64,000 nucleotides of DNA, from positions 1-64,000 of the forward strand of contig JAAPAO010000133.1 of assembly GCA_013115145.1 (NCBI GenBank), given 5' to 3'. The DNA is from Perkinsus chesapeaki ATCC PRA-425 (Eukaryota; Protista; Perkinsozoa). The notes beneath the pieces were generated by a model. The model saw only the letters and a list, made by a program, of their open reading frames with translations. It was not told the origin of the DNA and did no database searches. The translations under genes were made by a program, and so were the position numbers. Positions within the stretch are counted from its first letter, which is position 1; every line of letters begins with the position of its first letter. Below are positions 1 to 33,433 of the stretch, piece by piece.

Positions 1-870
1 GGTACAATGACTACGCCTGTCTACACGACAAATCAATCAGCGACTACTACCGGTCCTTCGGTGACAACAACGATCATTCCCGGTAACTCTACTGATGACT
101 TGACTACCACTGCCCCAATCTCCAATACCCCTACTCCAACAAATANNNNNNNNNNNNNNNNNNNNNNNNNNNNNNNNNNNNNNNNNNNNNNNNNNNNNNN
201 NNNNNNNNNNNNNNNNNNNNNNNNNNNNNNNNNNNNNNNCAAAAACTACGTTGTGGGATGAAGTTACGCAGCCTATCAATGCCACTACCACTACCTCCCC
301 CACGTCGGAGGCCAATGATACAATGACTACGCCTGTCTACACGACAAATCAATCAGCGACTACTACCGGCCCTTCGGTGACAACCACGACCATTCCCGGT
401 AACTCTACTGATGACTGGACTACCACTGCCCCAATCTCCAATACCCCTACTCCAACAAATACTACGTTGTGGGATGAAGTTACGCAGCCTATCAATGCCA
501 CTACCACTACCTCCCCCACGTCGGAGGCCAATGGTACAATGACTACGCCTGTCTACACGGCAAATCAATCAGCGACTACTACCGGTCCTTCGGTGACAAC
601 GACCCTTCCCGGTAACTCTACTGATGACTGGACTACCACTGCCCCCATCTTCAATACCTCTACTCCAACAAATACTACGTTGTGGGATGAAGTTACGCAG
701 CCTACCAATGCAACTAGCACTACCTCCCCCACGACGGCGACCAATGATACGGTGACTACACCTGTCTACACGACAAATGAACTGGCAACTACCACCGGTC
801 CTTCAGTGACAACAACAGCCATTCCTGGTAACTTCACTGATGACTGGACTACAACTGCGCCAACCTTCAA
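1..870 (+). repeat. Coding tandem repeat, unit 213-216 bp, at least 3 full copies plus a partial copy
   Basis: The anchor ttgtgggatgaagttacgcagcc recurs at 251, 467 and 680 (spacing 216 and 213); the last copy is more diverged. Confidence 0.9.
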
Positions 871-6723: not shown

Positions 6724-9709
6724 CTATCCACCAGCGGCCCGGTTGATCTCCCAGATATCCTTCACAGTTGCGTTCTCATCATCAACATAAAGCATATTGT
6801 CATACCTAACACCAAAACTCTCCCTCTGCTGTCTCCAAGCAGCTCACATATTCACGGTAGGATCGCAGTGGGCCGGCTGGATCAGCACAGCTCCCCCTGG
6901 TCTCTCGCAATGGCGCTCGCCCACCAAGGCTTTCAATGACTCGTTGCTGCCCTTTAACACGGTGTGCTCGTCACCAGCGCAACTGACACTGATGCCCTTG
7001 GCCGCCCCGCCAGCTGCACCGAAATAGGGAGAGACTTCCACAGGACCACGACCGTTGGGAACAGAACCGTAGAACACCGGAGACCTGATTTGAGGAAACG
7101 TCGGTATGACAGAGATGTACCCCCCGCCCACTTTATGCAACTGTAGTCCATTCCCTTCGTCCCAACGTCCAGAACGAGTCGACCGTCGCCAATACCTACA
7201 GCATCTCGTAGGGCGGCGGCAGAGGAGGCAGGGGAGGGGAGGGGAGGAAGGCTTACTTATAATGCTAGCCAGAACGAAGAGACTTGGTTTAAATATGGCG
7301 TCGTGATTAGCACAGTAATCGGCGTCCATGAACAGATATGATCCCGGCTGGACCTATACACCAACAGGGATCAAAGAGACGTACTGCATCAACAAGCCTA
7401 GCGCGATCTGATGAACTTCTCCCCCTGTGGAGAGGCGAACTATAGCCCAGTAATAGGCGGGCTTTATTATCCTTTTATTATCGGGTTTTGGGTTTTCGGG
7501 TTTCGGGTTTACCTCCTTGACGCAGCATTATTCTCAGTGAAATACACTGCAGTGAGGTATACTTTAGATACCGAGGAGTAGAAATGATTTTATGATCGGC
7601 CAGTAGGTGATGTGAATAATATAATGACAGCCCGGAATCACCAGCCGAGTGAAAAGAAGGATAATCATAACTTAATCACACAGGCAAGCGATCACTATTC
7701 GATAGCCCTAGTTTAGCCTTACCTCAGTAAACTGCCCACTATTGCCCTCCATTGTGAATGAGCCTGTACCTCCACCGGTAACACTATTTATTTCCAAACC
7801 AGCTTTATTAAACTCCCTTCTAACCTCCTCTACTATCTGTACCACAACATCACTCTCACTTTTACGATCAACTGGATCTCTAATTTGCTGTATTCCGCCA
7901 TGGTAGGCCTGACCAAACGGACAAGAGAGTCACTAACATTCATATAGCATTTTCGTTTGGCTACGACCCACGGGAAGCATTCTACTATCTCAGATAGTCT
8001 ACCTCTATTACACTATCTCTATAATATTTTAATTTACTAAAGCCCAATTATAATTATAATAATATCATCGCCTTCACCTCTAACAGGAGCTAATACCCAT
8101 AGGCACGCCGTACTGATATACAGTATTATCAAAACCTCAGTATAATACTCCATATCTATTGGATGCTCTACCTTCGCAATGATAGATTTCTGCATATTAT
8201 CTATTTCTTTACATCTCGATTTACGCTGATATATTTACTTAATACGTGCTCAATCCTTCCACTGTTTACCCCAACTAACACATTACTATTACTGAAACGC
8301 CTCATTGCTATCAATGTTGAGTAATGAGCCCAGAAGGGTTGATAGGGTATATCTACTAAGAAGTACCAAGTACAGACCGAGGTGAACTACCCCACACCAC
8401 CACCACAAGGCCGTCCCTTCACTACCTGTATTCCGCCCCTAAAGGTAACACCTTGACCCTCTAAGCTAAGCACGCTCTGGGCTAATGTAACTGCCTCTGC
8501 TGGAGTAGACAGGCCACATCTGCCTTGTCCGACATCAACGTCTATAACACACTCTATCTTAGTCTTCGGATTGTATTGCATAACTGCCGCTGATAAGCAG
8601 GCAACTTGGTGGGGATGGTCAACACAGACCTGAACAACAACACCCAAGACCGCATATCTCCTGACTATACGAGCTGAATGTATCAACACCGCGGCAATCC
8701 TCGGTGGTGGTGTGGTTGAGGAAGCATGTTCGAGTAGAAGTAGCAGCAATAGAAGAATGATGGCTTGGTTACTATAAATAATGATGAGCTTTAATACTAC
8801 CTTCAATGAGTCAACACGGCTCGCTATATCTACTAGCCTTTGAAGGGACTCTGGCTGCAACTGAGGTTCATTCGATATTAATATGTCCTTAGCTCCACCC
8901 TGACCATAAAGATAAGTAACAACTCTACGAACGAAGCCAACAGTAACACTTTGCCCAAAAGAAGCTGACGAGCCGAGCCGGAGTAGTCAGTGGGTCCCCT
9001 CCAAAAAATATCGACCAAAACAAAATTCAGATCATCCACTTAAAGAAGCTCCACTTCCCTCAGTACCTTCACACAGGTCTCCGCTTCTGTTAGCGTTTGA
9101 CAAGAAAAACCAACGGCGCCATCCTGATAGTGAACATGTCCAGCCTGGGGTTCGAACCCACGACCTTCCTCCTACTCACCTCCAGCTGTATGCGGGCGAT
9201 AGCCGGACTCTTGTGGGCCTTGGCATGTGGACGGAAGTTACACTTGAGCAAATTCTCGTGACTGAAATATAATTTAATAGCATCAAGTCACTTCACTGCA
9301 AGGGACACGTGAGGATCTCAAAGAGCACACAGTAAAGGGACACTGTTCTATTATACCAACCCTTCCAGGAGCCCCTATAGCAGGCCAGAACTGCCTTGCA
9401 GCACCAGTGGATACTAAGCAGATTAATACTAATATATCAATGATACATTACTCCATAGTCATATACCGATATTAATGATATATAGTGGACTGATGCTGGT
9501 TGCTATGAATGCATTACAAAGGTTCACATCCATCCCACGAAAGGTACCTTCCCAAACATCCACTACCTATTAAAAATATGATCCATCTTTTCCCTGTTAT
9601 ATGCAAATGCGCTCTCCATTACAACCAGCCTCGGAGTCTCGATCCTCGACAGATGACGGCCCAACGCGTGTAGCTGACGCAGGGAGGAACTGGATGTTGC
9701 TGCTTTCAT
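6724..9709 (-). CDS. D-threonine aldolase / D-serine dehydratase (DSD1) family, PLP-dependent alanine-racemase-like fold, about 10-11 exons
   Basis: Spliced motifs in the expected order: IETPRLVV, RPHAKAHK (PLP Lys), GAVGFSCQTLTEAE, DILISNE, VIDVDVGQGRCG, GIQ|AYHGGIQQIR, VTGGGTGS, TE|VQPGSYLFMDADY, VLDVGTKG, GDEHT, PAHCDPTVN, VKDIWEINR. Confidence 0.9.
7482..7510 (+). repeat. Short telomere-like degenerate (TTTNGGG) tract inside an intron
   Basis: cgggttttgggttttcgggtttcgggttt: four GGG blocks separated by T3-4(C). Confidence 0.4.
9137..9166 (-). other. tRNA 3'-half-like fragment (variable loop, T-arm, acceptor 3' strand) within an intron
   Basis: Minus strand reads aggtc gtggg TTCGAAC cccag gctggac a; no 5' half upstream. 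Confidence 0.45.
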
Positions 9710-25675: not shown

Positions 25676-25723
25676 CCATACGATGTTTCATCCATTGCTT
25701 GTTGCGTTATCAGTTGTGCTCTG

Positions 25724-25911
25724 AATTCAGTGTTCAGCACTGAAAGCCAAGGCGTTGAGAAACAGTTAAGATAGCAAGTTACGTCGCAGCGTGCTTGCGT
25801 ACACATTCATCAGTATATAAGCCTTTTTAACCACCCGTCTGTGGTATTGAGTTACTAGCGGCTTGCCGCATAGTCTCCGTGTACTTATCTCAACAACCCC
25901 TACACGGAATT
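25724..25911 (+). repeat. 5' LTR (188 bp), ends AATTCAGTGT...ACACGGAATT
   Basis: Identical to 32041-32228 except t25780 versus g32097. Contains a TATA-like tatataag. Confidence 0.93.
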
Positions 25912-25921
25912 TTCTACCGGG

Positions 25922-28900
25922 ATGAGCCAAAATAGTGATGACGACGACGCCGTGGTCAACGCCGCCCATGTCCTGGCCGAGTTGGTCAACCCAACACTGA
26001 ACCAGTTGACACAGGCCATCGGTCAGCTCATAGAGCAACAACAAGCTGCCAATAACCTCATGCAAACTATGGTGGAACGACAGGCCGCGAAGGAGAGCGA
26101 TGACAAGAAGGAGGACACTAAAGTGGAGGACGGCACGCACAAGCAAGAACAGCCCCTAATAGGCCCCGTAGTGACCCCAGGCGCGAGTGAGGAGACCCCC
26201 CTGAAGCCCTTGAGCCGTAGGCTGAGTTATGCTCCACCACCACAGAAAGGAGCCGGATTATGCTTGGGATGCGGGCACAGCCCTTGCCCTACGCCAGTCA
26301 CCGACCAACAGCTCACGGACGCTCTGAAGGCAGTCAAGCTGCTCAAGGCGCCGGAGGGCGGTCCCTTCAAAGGCGTATCTGACAATAGAACCGGTATTTC
26401 CTTTGAAAGGGAAACGAAGAAGTGTTGCGGCCGAATGTCATCTGTTGTTCTCTACCATTATCTACTGCAACACACAACACAGTCGGCGCAAGACGCGTTA
26501 GAGGTTGGCGAGGAATGGCCTGCCAACTGTCACAGGGATTACGAGATTGCAGTAGGAGGGATATGTACCAAGCTTCTCACGGTCTTCAGTAATCAAGCGT
26601 CTTCTGAAGGTATACTTCAAGCATGGAATGCCCTACAACAAAAACAGGATGAGAGTGTAGAGAGTTTCATCTCGAGAGTCTTGGCGATGACCACAGAGCT
26701 CAGACTGGCCGGCCTAGAACGACCAGAAAGAGAAGTTAAAGCCAAACTCCGCTGTGGCCTAGCAGAACGAGACCTACAAAGTACCCTACTCCAACATTCT
26801 CGCTTGAGCTTAAGTGACTTCATGGAAAAAATGGTGGAAGAAATGATAGATAGAAGAAGAGAAACTCACTCGGGGGAGTCCACATCCGTCCCGAACCCGA
26901 AGAGCACCACATCGACGACATCCAAAGGAGACAAAGCAGGCGGCCAAAACCCCACCACATCTAAACTACCTCCACCTGTGATAGAACTGGACGAGGTCCA
27001 CCTCAACGGTATCAATGCTGGCCAGTTACCGAGTGGAGCGCCAGGGTGCGCACGAGGCTGCGGCGACTCGGCTTGTCGAGGGGTTCGCTACTGCACACTG
27101 AAGCTACCAAACCTGCCACCAGAGGCGTGTTCGAGGTGTGGTCGAGCTCATCCAGCCGATCAGGTCTGCCCGGCGGTCAACAAGGTCTGTGCTCGCTGTA
27201 ACCGTGGAGGGCACTTTGCGGCGGCCTGTCGCAGCGCCCCAAGCGGTAGACAGCATTCTCGCCCGACACGTCGATGGCAGGGTGACAGACGCGGACAGTC
27301 TCAACAAGCAGCTAAAGGAGATCCTAATGACTCAAATAAACAAGACCAATCCAAGGAGGACAAGCAACATAAGGTGACAAATGCAATCATCAACATTGAC
27401 GACGTGCCATCTGACGACGACATCTTGCCCGACATCTTCGCGCTGTCAACTAGCCCCCCTCCAAAATCTGCTGATAACAAAACCAGACCCAATAGCGTGC
27501 CCACGGAGTCCTTGAAAGGCCCGCAGGTGAAAACACCTGTTTCGAAAGCCTTCTCTCAACTACCAGGACATGTGATAACCGTGATGGCATTATGGGATAC
27601 TGGTGCGACAGCAAACTTCGTGAGAGCCGACGTCCTCGAGACATTGGCCAAAAGGGGAAACACCTCTCTCAGATGGCCCGAAAAAGGGTCGCGTATTAAT
27701 GCCACCTTGGCCGATAATTTATCTCGAGTCCCACTCCAAGGGACTTGTCTCCTGGTCTTAAAGACTCCTAGAGCCACAGCTACCATCACTGCTTATGTGG
27801 TTCGCCACTTAAGCTTACCCTTGGTCATTGGTGTACCAGCTCTACAAGCATTAAGAGTCAAACTAGAATTTAGCCCACAAGGACGAGTGAGGATCAGGAC
27901 TGGTTACGTCGAGGGTACCTACGCAGACCCGTACAGAGGCGACTTAGTTCAATCTATGACAGCGAGACCAAGGCCATTTATGCCAAGGCCATGTGTTATC
28001 CAGCCCGAGCGGAGCCATGATGAGGAACTTACCATTCACACCCTCTCGGCTCCACCGGGCCAACTACTACATCATATGCAGTGGTCGCGTATACAGCCCA
28101 TATTAAACTTCGTGGACATCAACAACGACACCTCCATAGAGTGTGAGTTATCGTCCGTGCAAGAGACACCAGTAATGCTTCCAAGAGAAGCGATCCACAT
28201 AGACTCTACCCGGTCAGGAAGGCTGGTCGCGGACTTCACCTACAACAGTGATGCGGATTTCGAAGCACTGCAGGGGAAAGGCTGGAAAGCGGCTGTGAGC
28301 AGAGCTCAAAGGTCCTCATATGGCAAAACCCTCGAACAGAAAAATCTCATCAACGACGCCATCGACAAGCTACTGAGCTCTGACTTTGTCGGTTACCTCA
28401 AGCTCAAAACCCTATCACATCCGCCGCCCACGCACAGCATTGCAAGATTGTATGAATCTAGTGATCTTATACGCCAAACCCATCTGGTACAAGACCGTTA
28501 TCTACAAGCTCATCAGCCAGTGTATATACCGGCACAAGCGGTGTTCAAGCGGACTTCCAGTACTACTCCATGCAGGTTGGTATACGACATGCGCATGGTC
28601 AACAAAACCTTCACATTACCGACGGTTAGCAGGTGGAACCTATGGGACTACTTGGTACAGGCGTGCACAAGCCCGGTATGTAAGTTCATGGATGCTGAGA
28701 AGGCCTTCAATCAAGTCTTACTAACTTCAAAATCGGCAGCAAGCTGTGCCACAGTATTAATGAAAGCAAAAACTCCACAGGTATCAAGACCCGAAGCATA
28801 TGTTGTGCTATGGACATCCATGCCCTTTGGAGCTGGGCCGAGTCCAGGTGGGTTGGAAGCAGCAACCGAAGTATGGATAGAAGAGTCTAAGCAATTATCG

Positions 28901-31768
28901 AAGACACTGGTACCTCCACACCTTTCCCATACCAACCCCTTGCCGGACTTCTACACCCTGGACAGCTTCAAATATTGCAGACCCATCATACAGGATGCCT
29001 TCGAGAACCGGCCACTTGAGCCCGGTCCACCCCTCCATCTGCTGGACTATGTAGACGACTACGCTGTCATCGGCGACTCTCTAGCACAGCTCAATTGGCA
29101 CACGGACCTCGTCGAGGCCGCTGCAGGCCATAGAGGCTTCCGCTTCCCAGCCGCCAAGAAGTATCAATCATGGGACTCCGACAATGACAACAAGCTCCTT
29201 GGTTATCACCTAAGGAATGATCTTCTATCGCCTGTCTTCTCTGCCGAACCACTGCCAGAAGGCGCCCCATCACCGGTCACCAAACGGGCGGTGAGCCACA
29301 CCCTCGCCTCTCTCTATGATCCGTTAGGGAGATACATTGAACACAACATGATGGGTCGAAGTTTATGGAGATCAGTGGTGGATTCGACCAGAGAAGAGGA
29401 GTTACCCTCTGCCCTTACTTGGAACAAGGCCGTTCCCAATGGGTTAGTACAAGCCGTTAATCGTTGGGTAAAGGCAGTTTCGGCCCTACCTCCCACGCCG
29501 AGGTTTATACCAGTTCGATGGAGACATCCAACATCATCAGAATACAAACACTGTCAGTTATTAGTCTCCTGTGATGCCTCGAACATCGCCTGGTGTGTCG
29601 ACGTGAGATCCAAAGTCAACGGACTTCCTATTGGTCCAAGATTATGTGGTCGTGGTGGTCTGTTTCCACAACGGAGGACCTATAGTCCTGATGGTAGATC
29701 GACATCAACTCCAACGTCTACGGTACCAAGGCTTGAGCTCCACAGTTTACTACAAGCCACCAAGGAACTCCTTAGGCTATGCTCAGCTACCAGAGTCTCG
29801 CCTACCACCAATACTACTGCTATTATCATGTCTGACAGTCTGATTAATATACAAAGGCTGTGTCGTATGGGCAACAGATCCGAGACTGAGCTAGTGAACT
29901 GTATCGGTAAGAAGGGGAAGTGCAACTACACCAGAGGTGACCTGGCCAAACTTCTAAAGATCAGGCAGAACCTGAAGGATGTACCCATACCAGTCACCCT
30001 AATACACCTCCCTTCGGCACTCAACTTGGCTGATGATGGTTCAAGATGCAGAGCCCCTTCGAGAGGCCCAGAAGAGACGGAGCTGCTGGAAGCAATCTTA
30101 CAAGACCCGAGCCGACGCCCAAACTACATCCCCGGAGACACTCGTTTCGAAGATTGCTCTTTAGACGAGGACGAGCAGACCAACGACTGTTCCGAAGGTG
30201 ATGAACCCGGTTCGGTGGCGCTGTGCGCCACAGCTCCACAAGCTGGCCCCCTACCAACCCCTTTCAGCGACCAAGCAACCCTTCCCACTTTAACAGAGGC
30301 AGATAGGGCAACAATCGACGACGCTATCGAGGATTCCATTAAGAAAGACGGCTTCTATAACGCTGTCCGCTCTTACCTCAAGGATGGGACTGTCGCTGAT
30401 GGGTACTCTCCTGCTAGGCTGAAACGCCAAGCCACTAACTTCGAGCTGGATACATGTGGAAGACTCTTTAGGATAGTGAGGCAGCGTCCAGATGCTACGG
30501 TGGTGCGCCAACGAGTCATTTCTGGTCATGCTCACGACATCATCAACAAGATCATTATTACGCGCCATCTGGAATGGCACCACCTAGGTCCTCAAAAATT
30601 GACGATTCGTCTATCTGACTCATTTTATTGGCCCAGACAGCGTCGCACTGTCACCAGGGCTCTCAAAAGGTGCATCCCCTGTCTGAAGACTAATGCCATC
30701 CGTCAGTTCAACTCCAGTGCAGGCTGTCAACATGTAGCAGATTTACGACCTGGTCAAGTACAAGCATGTGATATCTATCTACCTAATGTGAAAGTCGATG
30801 GTGAGCAATCTGGCAATGCCGATCGCATCGTTGCGGCGCTTGTCATGACAGACCTTGCCTCGGGCTTCCAAAGACTACAACCCATACATGGATCTGCGAC
30901 ATCAGCCAATGTTTGCTCTGCTTTGGATCTACTATTTACAAATGTCCACTTTCCTACCGTGCTCATTACTGACAATGGTAAAAGCTTCGTCTCTAACCTA
31001 ACAGCACGCTGGTGTCGAGACCGGTCTATACTACAGTTATCTTGCCCGGTGTACGCCCCGGCTCTGGCGTATTGGGAGAGATCTCACCGTGAGATAAGCC
31101 GAGCGTTGAAGGCCTGTTTATTTGATCATACCATGGTGGGAACTTGGTTCGACAAGTTGGTACAAGTCGTCAACCATCTGAATGATGCTCCGTACAACTC
31201 TGATTCGTGGCTCAGCCCCCGCTTGGTGGCGCACCCGCATTACGACATTAACCACTACTACAACACAAACAGTGCATCAGTGAACGACCTCGCCAAGAAG
31301 CTGACGACCGTGAGCCAACCAGCAGTGGCTGAGCGAGTCAGAGAAAGCGGCAAGAAGACCTACACTATCCGTATGCTTGATTATCTTAACCATTGGACTA
31401 CATTTAAGGAAGCTAGTAGAGCGAGAACCCTTGCTCACCATGGACGTCCGTGTGATCTTGCTGTCGGAGATACAGTTTTCCACCTCACTGGTCAGTCATC
31501 TAAATTATCTTCCAGAGTGGCTGGTCCTTATATTGTTGACACCGTTGATGAGGATCACAAAGGTACGGTTATTATCCGTGGAGCTGATCACTGTACGTGT
31601 CGTGTATGGGTATCTAACCTTGTCAAAGTACCACCTCTGAAGTCTGAGGGCGACACTACTACTTCTACTCCAAGCCCTGATTTATCACCTGATGGTTATG
31701 CTTGGACATTAGATCATCTTCCTCCAATACAAGTACTTCCTCCCCCTAACTATCCTGGGAAAAGGTAA
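25922..31768 (+). CDS. Gag-Pol polyprotein (1948 aa): Gag with Zn knuckles, aspartic protease, RT, RNase H, integrase
   Basis: CARCNRGGHFAAAC (CCHC), ALWDTGATANFV, MDAEKAFNQV, MPFGAGPSP, YVDD, VTKR...SLYDPLG, SCDAS, TVPRLEL, SDS, HLPSALNLADDGSR, H-H...C-C zinc motif, TDNGKSF, YWERSHREI, AGPY. Confidence 0.97.
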   Translation: MSQNSDDDDAVVNAAHVLAELVNPTLNQLTQAIGQLIEQQQAANNLMQTMVERQAAKESDDKKEDTKVEDGTHKQEQPLIGPVVTPGASEETPLKPLSRRLSYAPPPQKGAGLCLGCGHSPCPTPVTDQQLTDALKAVKLLKAPEGGPFKGVSDNRTGISFERETKKCCGRMSSVVLYHYLLQHTTQSAQDALEVGEEWPANCHRDYEIAVGGICTKLLTVFSNQASSEGILQAWNALQQKQDESVESFISRVLAMTTELRLAGLERPEREVKAKLRCGLAERDLQSTLLQHSRLSLSDFMEKMVEEMIDRRRETHSGESTSVPNPKSTTSTTSKGDKAGGQNPTTSKLPPPVIELDEVHLNGINAGQLPSGAPGCARGCGDSACRGVRYCTLKLPNLPPEACSRCGRAHPADQVCPAVNKVCARCNRGGHFAAACRSAPSGRQHSRPTRRWQGDRRGQSQQAAKGDPNDSNKQDQSKEDKQHKVTNAIINIDDVPSDDDILPDIFALSTSPPPKSADNKTRPNSVPTESLKGPQVKTPVSKAFSQLPGHVITVMALWDTGATANFVRADVLETLAKRGNTSLRWPEKGSRINATLADNLSRVPLQGTCLLVLKTPRATATITAYVVRHLSLPLVIGVPALQALRVKLEFSPQGRVRIRTGYVEGTYADPYRGDLVQSMTARPRPFMPRPCVIQPERSHDEELTIHTLSAPPGQLLHHMQWSRIQPILNFVDINNDTSIECELSSVQETPVMLPREAIHIDSTRSGRLVADFTYNSDADFEALQGKGWKAAVSRAQRSSYGKTLEQKNLINDAIDKLLSSDFVGYLKLKTLSHPPPTHSIARLYESSDLIRQTHLVQDRYLQAHQPVYIPAQAVFKRTSSTTPCRLVYDMRMVNKTFTLPTVSRWNLWDYLVQACTSPVCKFMDAEKAFNQVLLTSKSAASCATVLMKAKTPQVSRPEAYVVLWTSMPFGAGPSPGGLEAATEVWIEESKQLSKTLVPPHLSHTNPLPDFYTLDSFKYCRPIIQDAFENRPLEPGPPLHLLDYVDDYAVIGDSLAQLNWHTDLVEAAAGHRGFRFPAAKKYQSWDSDNDNKLLGYHLRNDLLSPVFSAEPLPEGAPSPVTKRAVSHTLASLYDPLGRYIEHNMMGRSLWRSVVDSTREEELPSALTWNKAVPNGLVQAVNRWVKAVSALPPTPRFIPVRWRHPTSSEYKHCQLLVSCDASNIAWCVDVRSKVNGLPIGPRLCGRGGLFPQRRTYSPDGRSTSTPTSTVPRLELHSLLQATKELLRLCSATRVSPTTNTTAIIMSDSLINIQRLCRMGNRSETELVNCIGKKGKCNYTRGDLAKLLKIRQNLKDVPIPVTLIHLPSALNLADDGSRCRAPSRGPEETELLEAILQDPSRRPNYIPGDTRFEDCSLDEDEQTNDCSEGDEPGSVALCATAPQAGPLPTPFSDQATLPTLTEADRATIDDAIEDSIKKDGFYNAVRSYLKDGTVADGYSPARLKRQATNFELDTCGRLFRIVRQRPDATVVRQRVISGHAHDIINKIIITRHLEWHHLGPQKLTIRLSDSFYWPRQRRTVTRALKRCIPCLKTNAIRQFNSSAGCQHVADLRPGQVQACDIYLPNVKVDGEQSGNADRIVAALVMTDLASGFQRLQPIHGSATSANVCSALDLLFTNVHFPTVLITDNGKSFVSNLTARWCRDRSILQLSCPVYAPALAYWERSHREISRALKACLFDHTMVGTWFDKLVQVVNHLNDAPYNSDSWLSPRLVAHPHYDINHYYNTNSASVNDLAKKLTTVSQPAVAERVRESGKKTYTIRMLDYLNHWTTFKEASRARTLAHHGRPCDLAVGDTVFHLTGQSSKLSSRVAGPYIVDTVDEDHKGTVIIRGADHCTCRVWVSNLVKVPPLKSEGDTTTSTPSPDLSPDGYAWTLDHLPPIQVLPPPNYPGKR

Positions 31769-32030
31769 ATCTCCTTCATTGAATTATCAGGTTTATGCCC
31801 TTCTCTGATGCCGATAAGCCCGCATTGGTGGTGAATCTTATCCATCTGAGTCGTGGTGCACGTAGCGTGCGTTATTATCTTACTAATGTAATGAGTCCGT
31901 TCAGGTCTCTCGTGACATCGTCTCACATTAGCATCTTCGTTCGAGTCTTGATTATTGATAGAGGCTTCATATGGTGTTAAGCTGATCCTGTTAGCGAGAC
32001 TCATTCAGTATCTGATGTTTGTTGGCAGCC

Positions 32031-32040
32031 GCGGCGGGAG
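32031..32040 (+). other. Polypurine-tract-like sequence (plus-strand primer)
   Basis: gcggcgggag directly abuts the 3' LTR. Confidence 0.6.
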
Positions 32041-32228
32041 AATTCAGTGTTCAGCACTGAAAGCCAAGGCGTTGAGAAACAGTTAAGATAGCAAGTGACG
32101 TCGCAGCGTGCTTGCGTACACATTCATCAGTATATAAGCCTTTTTAACCACCCGTCTGTGGTATTGAGTTACTAGCGGCTTGCCGCATAGTCTCCGTGTA
32201 CTTATCTCAACAACCCCTACACGGAATT
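32041..32228 (+). repeat. 3' LTR (188 bp)
   Basis: Direct repeat of 25724-25911, followed by the tctg duplication. Confidence 0.93.
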
Positions 32229-32440
32229 TCTGCCTAAATCGATTACCGCGGCGCGCGCGATTGACGAACTGGCATTTTTGCTCTTCACCGTGTTGCCTTT
32301 ACGGAAGCTGAGTGTTGAACTACACTAGTGTTTGCGGTCTGTTATATGTTATTTATGGGGCCTATATACGCCTGCCTTGGACCTCTTAGCTGTCCTATCA
32401 TAGATAGCTCACTTCTTGCCGTAGTATTGTTTATAGAGTA

Positions 32441-33433
32441 ATGTCCTCAGCACCTAGGAAGAAGGTCCTCTTAAAGGTCATCATTTTGGGTGATAGCGGG
32501 TAGTAGGGGTATAATGTCGGTAATAACAATTGAAGCTATCGCTGTGTTAGAGTCGGTAAGACTTCTCTTATGAACCAATATGTTAATAAGAAGTTCAGCC
32601 CTCAGTATAAGGTGGGCGGCGGCACAAAGGACGATAGGCTAGATAGGATTCGACGGTTTCCTCTAGGCGACCATCGGGGCTGATTTCCTTACAAAGGAGG
32701 TTACCATCGACGATAAGGTGGTGACACTCCAGATCTGGGATACCGCTGGTCAGGAGAGATTCCAGAGTCTCGGTGAGCAGCAACAGCCTTCCCATGCTGC
32801 AGAATAGGCATTGGTGGTGTTCAGGTGTTGCGTTCTATCGCGGTGCTGACTGCTGCTGTTTGGTGTATGATATCACCAATCCTAAAAGCTTTGAGAGTCT
32901 GGACTCCTGGCGGGACGAGTTTCTCATTCAGGTTAGTTGATAGCAAATGGTGAAGTGGGTACCTTCTTGCATCAGGCATCCCCCAGAGACCCCGAGGAGT
33001 TCCCCTTCGTAGTTGTTGGTAACAAGCTGGACATGGAGGCCAAACGAAAGGTTATAATGGTCTAACGATCGCTGCTTTAACGGGAACGGTGATGGACAGG
33101 TCTCGAAGGCTCGAGCGACAACATGGTGCAGGTCGAAGAACAACATTCCTTGTTTTGAAACCAGCGCGAAGGATTCTGTCAATGTGGAGCAGGTGCCGCC
33201 GCCGACGCTCCGCCCGGCTATTGAATCCCATTTTGCTTCGATCAGGCTTTCGTTGAAATCGCTCGACGAGCTCTGCAGAACGAGGCTGCTATGGCCAAGG
33301 AACAGGAGCAAATGTAAGCCTACTGTGGCGGGATGGTGTCGAGGTGTCTTTCAGGTATCTTTCCCAAACGCTCAACCTTAACAATCCTCCATCGGAGAGC
33401 CAAAGCTCTAACGTGCAGCAGTGCGAATGTTAA
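32441..33433 (+). CDS. RAB7: Rab7 small GTPase, 8 exons
   Basis: [14 protein letters not shown]|[39 protein letters not shown]|[22 protein letters not shown]-terminal CEC prenylation motif. Confidence 0.97.

Follow-up and report, generated by a model that had tools for sequence, protein, structure and literature searches.

AATT-ended BEL/Pao-like retrotransposons in the protist Perkinsus and their insertion beside a bipartite DNA motif

Long terminal repeat (LTR) retrotransposons with ends other than TG...CA have been described in animals: in Drosophila, the LTRs of the Zam-clade errantiviruses read AGTTA...TAATT or TAACT, without TG...CA (PMC3601003, Table 3), and in aquatic animals the Troyka elements have CG...CG ends and target-site duplications (TSDs) of 3 bp, the fixation of non-TG/CA ends in this lineage having been confirmed by comparing insertions (PMC12440569). 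Drosophila TSDs measure 4 bp in the Gypsy group and 5 bp in the Pao group (PMC3276498), and Bel/Pao elements have been described as exclusively metazoan (PMC3601003). The stretch of DNA analysed here, called the window (64,000 nucleotides; positions 1 to 64,000 of contig JAAPAO010000133.1, assembly GCA_013115145.1), comes from Perkinsus chesapeaki ATCC PRA-425, an alveolate protist and not an animal; at 25724-32228 it contains an intact BEL/Pao-like LTR retrotransposon. The integrated ends of this element and its relatives are A(A/G)TT...GAATT, not TG...CA, and the TSD is 4 bp. The best explanation taken as a whole, which we consider quite probable, is that the window element is young and apparently complete and belongs to a Perkinsus-specific BEL/Pao-like clade. 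We put only a little above even the chances of a threefold combination, in which errantivirus-like ends replaced TG...CA in a protist BEL/Pao-like clade, integration is base-pair-precise at one helical turn from a bipartite promoter motif of protein-coding genes, and reverse transcription is primed by a tRNA-Gln lacking its last six nucleotides, a primer common to other Perkinsus LTR families.

The two LTRs of the window element (25724-25911 and 32041-32228, both on the plus strand) measure 188 bp each and differ by one mismatch; they start with AATTCAGTGT and finish with ACACGGAATT, forming a 10-bp terminal inverted repeat with one mismatch, and the 5' copy contains TATATAA at 25814. Identical copies of TCTG flank the pair (25720-25723 and 32229-32232), and 4 bp is the only length that fits among duplications of 2-8 bp. 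TGT and ACA sit 7 bp inside each LTR end, and no duplication results if the ends are put there. The initial annotation had described an LTR retrotransposon with AATT ends, an exact 4-bp TSD, a 10-bp inverted repeat with one mismatch and this recessed TGT...ACA, and all of these features are borne out. A repeat finder lengthens the LTR match by one base on both sides because the polypurine tract and the TSD both end in G, and the primer-binding site and the TSD both begin with T; solo LTRs have different bases at these two positions. No base separates the LTRs from the priming sites: the polypurine tract GGCGGGAG (32033-32040, plus strand) directly abuts the 3' LTR, and the 12-nt primer-binding site TTCTACCGGGAT (25912-25923, plus strand) abuts the 5' LTR.

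The family of the window element is low-copy, comprising one full element (AATTCAG...GGAATT, TSD TCTG, on the contig here labelled C365), two solo LTRs and one internal fragment. The solo LTR on contig C3093 reads AATTCAG...GGAATT with the TSD TTCT, and that on C3114 reads AATTCAG...CCGAATT between CTGC and CTGG. Related elements extend the pattern: a second P. chesapeaki family on C664, at about 42% identity in pol and with LTRs 100% identical to each other, has the ends AATTCAGGG...CATCGAATT (the right end also given as ...CGAATT) and the TSD AAAG, and a P. marinus relative has the ends AGTTCCCTC...ACACGGAATT, that is AGTTCCC...GGAATT, and the TSD GAGA. Tabulating other copies and solo LTRs in this way, as the initial annotation had advised, gives A(A/G)TT...AATT ends with an exact 4-bp TSD in four of the five insertions for which both flanks are available; in the fifth, on C3114, three of four bases agree, or all four if one takes out an 8-bp tandem duplication at the junction, and 4 bp is the only duplication length that fits in all five. 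At C3114 (locus L004, around 600-615, minus strand) the junction reads GAATTCTG-GAATTCTG-C, the tandem duplication spanning the LTR end and the TSD; dropping one copy of GAATTCTG gives an exact CTGC, and contigs of two independent sequencing studies contain the duplication. The internal fragment (C90:2521-4371) is 86-92% identical to the internal region of the window element and has no matching LTRs.

Elements with a single known side show the same arrangement at the 5' LTR. The P. olseni relatives have the ends AATTCAGTGATG...CAACGAATT, AGTTCCCTGAAC...GCACGGAATT and ...CAAGGAATT, each abutting the primer-binding site, and the junction ...GAATT|TTCTACCGGGAT is found in seven elements of three species. 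It is also present on C1165, where the 3' LTR lies beyond the contig and the coding region is decayed; two P. olseni loci, L081 and L090, represent one insertion whose 3' LTR lies beyond the contig in both, and a further locus, L083, has no LTR pair. At L090 (6740-6793) the LTR start of the P0153-type element is repeated as a 10-bp copy, AATTCAGTGA, 44 bp upstream of its true 5' LTR; an earlier insertion or a rearrangement may have left it there.

In a maximum-likelihood tree of the region from reverse transcriptase (RT) to integrase (IN), which holds only unnamed relatives and no labelled BEL/Pao reference elements, the AATT-ended elements form one clade (SH-aLRT 100), and all four of its subclades finish ...GAATT straight against the primer-binding site. 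Another Perkinsus clade is its sister (joint support 99); in the single member analysed, the LTRs measure 572 bp and read TGTGAACGG...GCTCACA, hence TGTG...CACA ends, the TSD is GAAC and the primer-binding site is identical. As the TG...CA sister also has a 4-bp TSD, the end signature changed and the TSD length did not; on the sequences compared, the ends are a trait of the clade, and the 4-bp TSD is common to the canonical sister, as judged from one insertion. The initial annotation had suggested a lineage with altered integrase end recognition, and a monophyletic AATT clade next to a TG...CA sister supports that suggestion: a lineage-specific change in end recognition would fit this distribution. 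After the first catalytic aspartate, the integrase alignment reads D-[IL]-Y-L-P in the AATT clade (D-I-Y-L-P in the window element) versus D-[IL]-x-G-P in the sister clade and in P0018, the protein of a metagenomic relative, and this difference is no more than a candidate determinant of end specificity. A difference in the loop that precedes the catalytic glutamate was rejected as the cause of the end change, since it is found in both Perkinsus clades.

The polarity of this change admits one serious alternative, in which the AATT-type end is ancestral to a wider protist BEL/Pao-like group and the Perkinsus TG...CA clade reverted. Its support comes from the JGI metagenome contig L088, which encodes P0018 and contains (1471-1674 and 7393-7491) a BEL/Pao-like element of an unknown eukaryote; there AATTGCG follows the polypurine tract GGGCCGGGAG, and ...ACCAATT, a possible LTR end, would give a 5-bp inverted repeat, so that AATT-type ends may exist outside Perkinsus. 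However, the 3' LTR of L088 is cut by the contig end, leaving neither TSD nor end checkable, the position of P0018 in the tree is weakly supported, another relative, L086, ends TGTTCC...GGAACA (with no clear TSD), and TG...CA is the near-universal state of LTR elements (PMC12440569, PMC3601003). We therefore regard an ancestral AATT end as unlikely, at perhaps one chance in several, and favour replacement of TG...CA within Perkinsus. Two ENA metagenome contigs, L084 and L086, carry retroelements with the Pfam family PF05380 amid tightly spaced housekeeping genes (FBPase, ABC transporter, WD40 and others); these contigs resemble those of small microbial eukaryotes, and BEL/Pao-like elements may be more widespread outside animals.

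The assignment to BEL/Pao follows from the coding region. PF05380, the Pao-type Peptidase_A17, matches the window element at 35.9 bits against a cutoff of 22.3, and it is present in all eight nearest relatives outside the window clade and then in 25 of the 36 next-nearest. The Gypsy-type domains RT_RNaseH (in 12) and RT_RNaseH_2 (in 11) also occur among these 36, in the more distant matches, which are read as matching mainly through the integrase. Like the BEL/Pao elements (Belpaoviridae; Pao, BEL, roo, Max), the window element has an LTR-flanked gag-pol in the order protease (PR), RT, RNase H (RH) and IN, with Peptidase_A17 between RT and RNase H and an HHCC plus DD35E integrase; its nearest relatives are of BEL/Pao type, and its TSD is within the 4-6 bp range of the family. 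TG...CA ends, a trait typical of the family and not defining, are lacking in the AATT clade and present in its sister. The Perkinsus element differs from BEL/Pao in its protist host, its A(A/G)TT...AATT ends, its 4-bp TSD as against 5 bp in the Drosophila Pao group (PMC3276498), and its 12-nt site for a 3'-shortened tRNA-Gln. It differs further in the domain DUF5641, which gives no match in the window element or in 44 relatives, while the BEL/Pao-type animal clusters of an atlas search carry it.

By their ends, the Perkinsus elements are closer to the Drosophila errantiviruses (Zam, gypsy, 17.6 and 297; Metaviridae), with which they share the end type (PMC3601003), the P. marinus element reading AGTTCC...GGAATT within the AGTT...AAYT pattern, as well as 4-bp TSDs and sequence-specific targets (PMC3276498). 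The errantiviruses nevertheless belong to another superfamily, with a Gypsy-type RT and RNase H and an env gene, whereas the Perkinsus element is a single open reading frame (ORF) of BEL/Pao-type domains; a Pfam search found no RT_RNaseH or env family in the window element, PF05380 standing in that position. Because errantivirus-type ends are here carried by a BEL/Pao-type polymerase, convergence is the simplest reading, and the resemblance is probably convergent. The parallel to the Drosophila gypsy group that the initial annotation drew holds for the ends and for the 4-bp TSD, but its linking of the short TSD to the odd ends does not, the TG...CA sister having 4 bp too. Troyka resembles the Perkinsus clade as a whole lineage with fixed non-TG/CA ends (PMC12440569) and is unlike it in end sequence, TSD length and hosts, and phylogenetically separate from it. 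A search of a limited library returned no paper on BEL/Pao elements in Perkinsus, on the motif described below or on such a primer-binding site.

The insertions of the AATT clade also share a landmark in the host DNA. The hexamer ATCGAT lies exactly 5 bp from the TSD at five of seven insertions in three species, the flanks reading, from the TSD outward, TCTG-cctaa-ATCGAT, TTCT-tcata-ATCGAT, CTTT-gtccc-ATCGAT, TCTC-atcat-ATCGAT and CCCG-acgtc-ATCGAT; six bases past ATCGAT stands GGCG in four of the five and GACG in the fifth. In the window, the full motif ATCGATTACCGCGGCGC (ATCGAT-N6-GGCGC; 32238-32254, plus strand) begins 5 bp past the right TSD copy, with the same spacing at the four other insertions. 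By itself, ATCGAT is not enriched in the window (20 copies versus 15 +/- 4 in shuffles); within the loci examined, ATCGAT-N6-GGCG occurs only beside insertions. Exact sites have a density of about one per 150 kb in the genome, which makes chance placement at a fixed offset negligible. Across the genome, ATCGAT-N6-GGCGC has 275 copies versus 4 for a reversed control, with the consensus ATCGAT[TC]A-N3-[GT]GGCGC. The element always lies on the ATCGAT side, with the motif beyond the 3' LTR in two cases and beyond the 5' LTR in three, and, measured from centre to centre, the TSD and the ATCGAT palindrome are 10 bp apart, or one helical turn.

At all five sites an ATG-initiated frame begins 98-481 bp downstream of the motif, in the direction from ATCGAT to GGCGC. 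The downstream gene is of the Ras family at the window site, citrate synthase at C3093 and an open frame at the other three, which suggests that the motif is an undescribed promoter element of Perkinsus genes. In the window, the ATG of the Rab/Ras-family gene lies about 200 bp downstream of the motif, its first exon (32441-32500, plus strand) encodes 20 amino acids, and the Pfam Ras match falls on a later exon (32667-32774). Alternatively, and with no targeting, insertions might have survived there because they do no harm, or might have gone into a repeat that the sites share; all motif-adjacent insertions indeed lie outside coding sequence and upstream of genes, where they are perhaps tolerated. 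Yet selection is unable to place five independent insertions, in three species, at exactly 5 bp from the motif, and the flanks share nothing but a short motif found about once per 150 kb, so that we judge this account improbable. Targeting, the preferred reading, would mean that the integration complex is guided, directly or via a host DNA-binding protein, to a promoter-proximal ATCGAT[TC]A-N4-GGCGC and that insertion takes place on its ATCGAT side in either orientation. A Pfam search found no extra DNA-binding domain in the gag, the RH-IN linker or the integrase tail of the window element. A candidate known from the pattern match alone is GAATT-CGCT-GATAA-ATCGAT-TAGATG-GGCG on C203 (5107-5136, minus strand), which could be read as an LTR end followed by a 4-bp TSD and the motif and may mark another insertion of the AATT clade; about 0.4 such matches are expected by chance.

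Yeast Ty3, S. pombe Tf1 and Dictyostelium DGLT-A integrate at a fixed distance from a promoter feature, in both orientations, and so spare coding sequence; elements of this type use Pol III factors or nucleosome-free Pol II promoters. The Perkinsus landmark is unlike these in being a short bipartite DNA motif with bp-exact spacing and a putative tether.

How the AATT ends are produced can be traced to the priming sites. The 12-mer TTCTACCGGGAT is complementary to ...AUCCCGGUAGAA in tRNA-Gln, and the genes for this tRNA read ...GGTTCAAATCCCGGTAGAACCT and end ...AATCCCGGTAGAACCT; the pairing covers tRNA-Gln positions 59-70 and stops 6 nt before the mature CCA end. In retroviruses, plus-strand copying of the tRNA primer stops at the modified A58, and complementarity normally begins at position 59. 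As U5 ends where minus-strand synthesis starts, the 3' end of the primer would be at or before position 70, and we infer that the primer is a tRNA-Gln-derived species without the last six nucleotides (CC-U-CCA), from which minus-strand synthesis would start. In copia and Tca2, which are primed by tRNA fragments, and in Tf1, which is self-primed, the primer is likewise not the intact CCA end of a tRNA; the Perkinsus pairing differs from these in using the normal 3' region of tRNA-Gln minus its last six nucleotides and in being common to many unrelated LTR families. The word TCCCGGTAGAA occurs 86 times in the genome, versus 21 for its reversed control, both in tRNA-Gln gene arrays and beside many LTR ends. 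Many unrelated Perkinsus LTR families (L044-L072, L076, L077, L081, L082 and L089) have TTCTACCGGGAT directly against the LTR, most of them ending ...ACA.

On the opposite side, the polypurine 8-mer GGCGGGAG is identical in the window, C664 and P. marinus elements and reads GCCGGGAG in P. olseni L081; plus-strand synthesis would start immediately after it. The resulting complementary DNA (cDNA) would end at ...GAATT-3', or at most 2 nt beyond, on both strands, and the integrase would then join the terminal T to target DNA with a 4-bp stagger, a scheme of its biochemistry that is read from integrated copies. The inner CA, 7 bp inside, would accordingly have no part in joining. A competing possibility is that the integrase still acts at the inner TG...CA and that the 7-bp tails AATTCAG and NNGAATT are cDNA extensions without a part in joining. 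The inner CA is indeed kept at -9/-8 in eight of nine 3' ends, and the inner TG at +8/+9 in three of five distinct 5' ends, C664 having GG and P. marinus TC there. Processing at that site would, however, strip the 7 bp, yet every integrated copy and both solo LTRs retain them, and the 4-bp TSDs are flush with AATT; joining at the inner CA is thus very improbable. With joining at the terminal T preferred, the inner TG...CA may be what is left of canonical ends that gained 7 bp on either side, or it may belong to the integrase-binding site.

The remaining parts of the window element are those of a complete retrotransposon. Between the LTRs runs a single intact gag-pol ORF of 1948 aa (25922-31768, plus strand, as are all its domains), whose ATG overlaps the primer-binding site, the last two bases of the site being the A and T of the start codon. 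It encodes two CCHC knuckles (27128-27229), a protease DTG (aa 559-561; 27587-27607), an RT YVDD (aa 1043-1046; 29045-29062), the Peptidase_A17 homology found with Pfam (aa 1120-1290; 29279-29791) and an integrase (30542-31087) with an HHCC zinc domain (30542-30697) and an intact DD35E core (D1617, D1684, E1719), HHCC and DDE together spanning aa 1541-1719. The insertion junctions are present in Logan contigs of two independent sequencing studies at a depth equal to that of the flanks, as read from assembled contigs of the runs and not from raw reads, so that the element is not an assembly artefact. The assembly has no second copy of either window flank, and the contigs of the two studies contain no loose end such as an unoccupied allele would leave. 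No contig of the two possible RNA runs fell on the window element, a result uninformative on expression either way. Although BEL/Pao has been called metazoan-restricted (PMC3601003) and the parasite lives in clams, contamination from an animal host, like an artefact of assembly, can be given practically no credence, since the most similar proteins are those of P. marinus, P. olseni and P. chesapeaki (the C664-family protein P0004 is KAF4670049 of P. chesapeaki, its closest other proteins being from the other two species), element and flanks have equal depth, the primer-binding site recurs across the genome in many other LTR families and matches the tRNA-Gln genes found there, and the element sits about 200 bp upstream of a Rab/Ras-family gene.

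Several points weigh against the best explanation, with its changed ends, motif-directed integration and shortened primer. Both flanks are known for just five insertions, and a single one stands for the whole TG...CA sister clade; P0018 may also belong to an element starting with AATT, which makes the direction of the end change less certain. The promoter role of the motif rests on its position before five genes, and the motif is absent at the older C3114 solo LTR and on the 5' side, the sole known side, of P. olseni L081. The shortened tRNA-Gln is a species predicted from sequence, and the cDNA may be blunt at ...GAATT or may carry conserved AG/TT dinucleotides that are later removed, the sequence fitting both.

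Few features of retroviral and LTR-element integration are as conserved as the terminal CA, and a changed clade beside an unchanged sister offers a natural comparison for the integrase residues that read the DNA end. The elements extend BEL/Pao-like retrotransposons to an alveolate protist, and the exact spacing from the motif suggests a new targeting mechanism while flagging a likely core promoter element of Perkinsus. LTR finders that require TG...CA ends or a primer-binding site starting with TGG would probably miss such elements. If the threefold combination is true, the AATT clade would allow the end specificity of integrases, motif-directed targeting and unusual primer processing to be studied together in one compact natural system.

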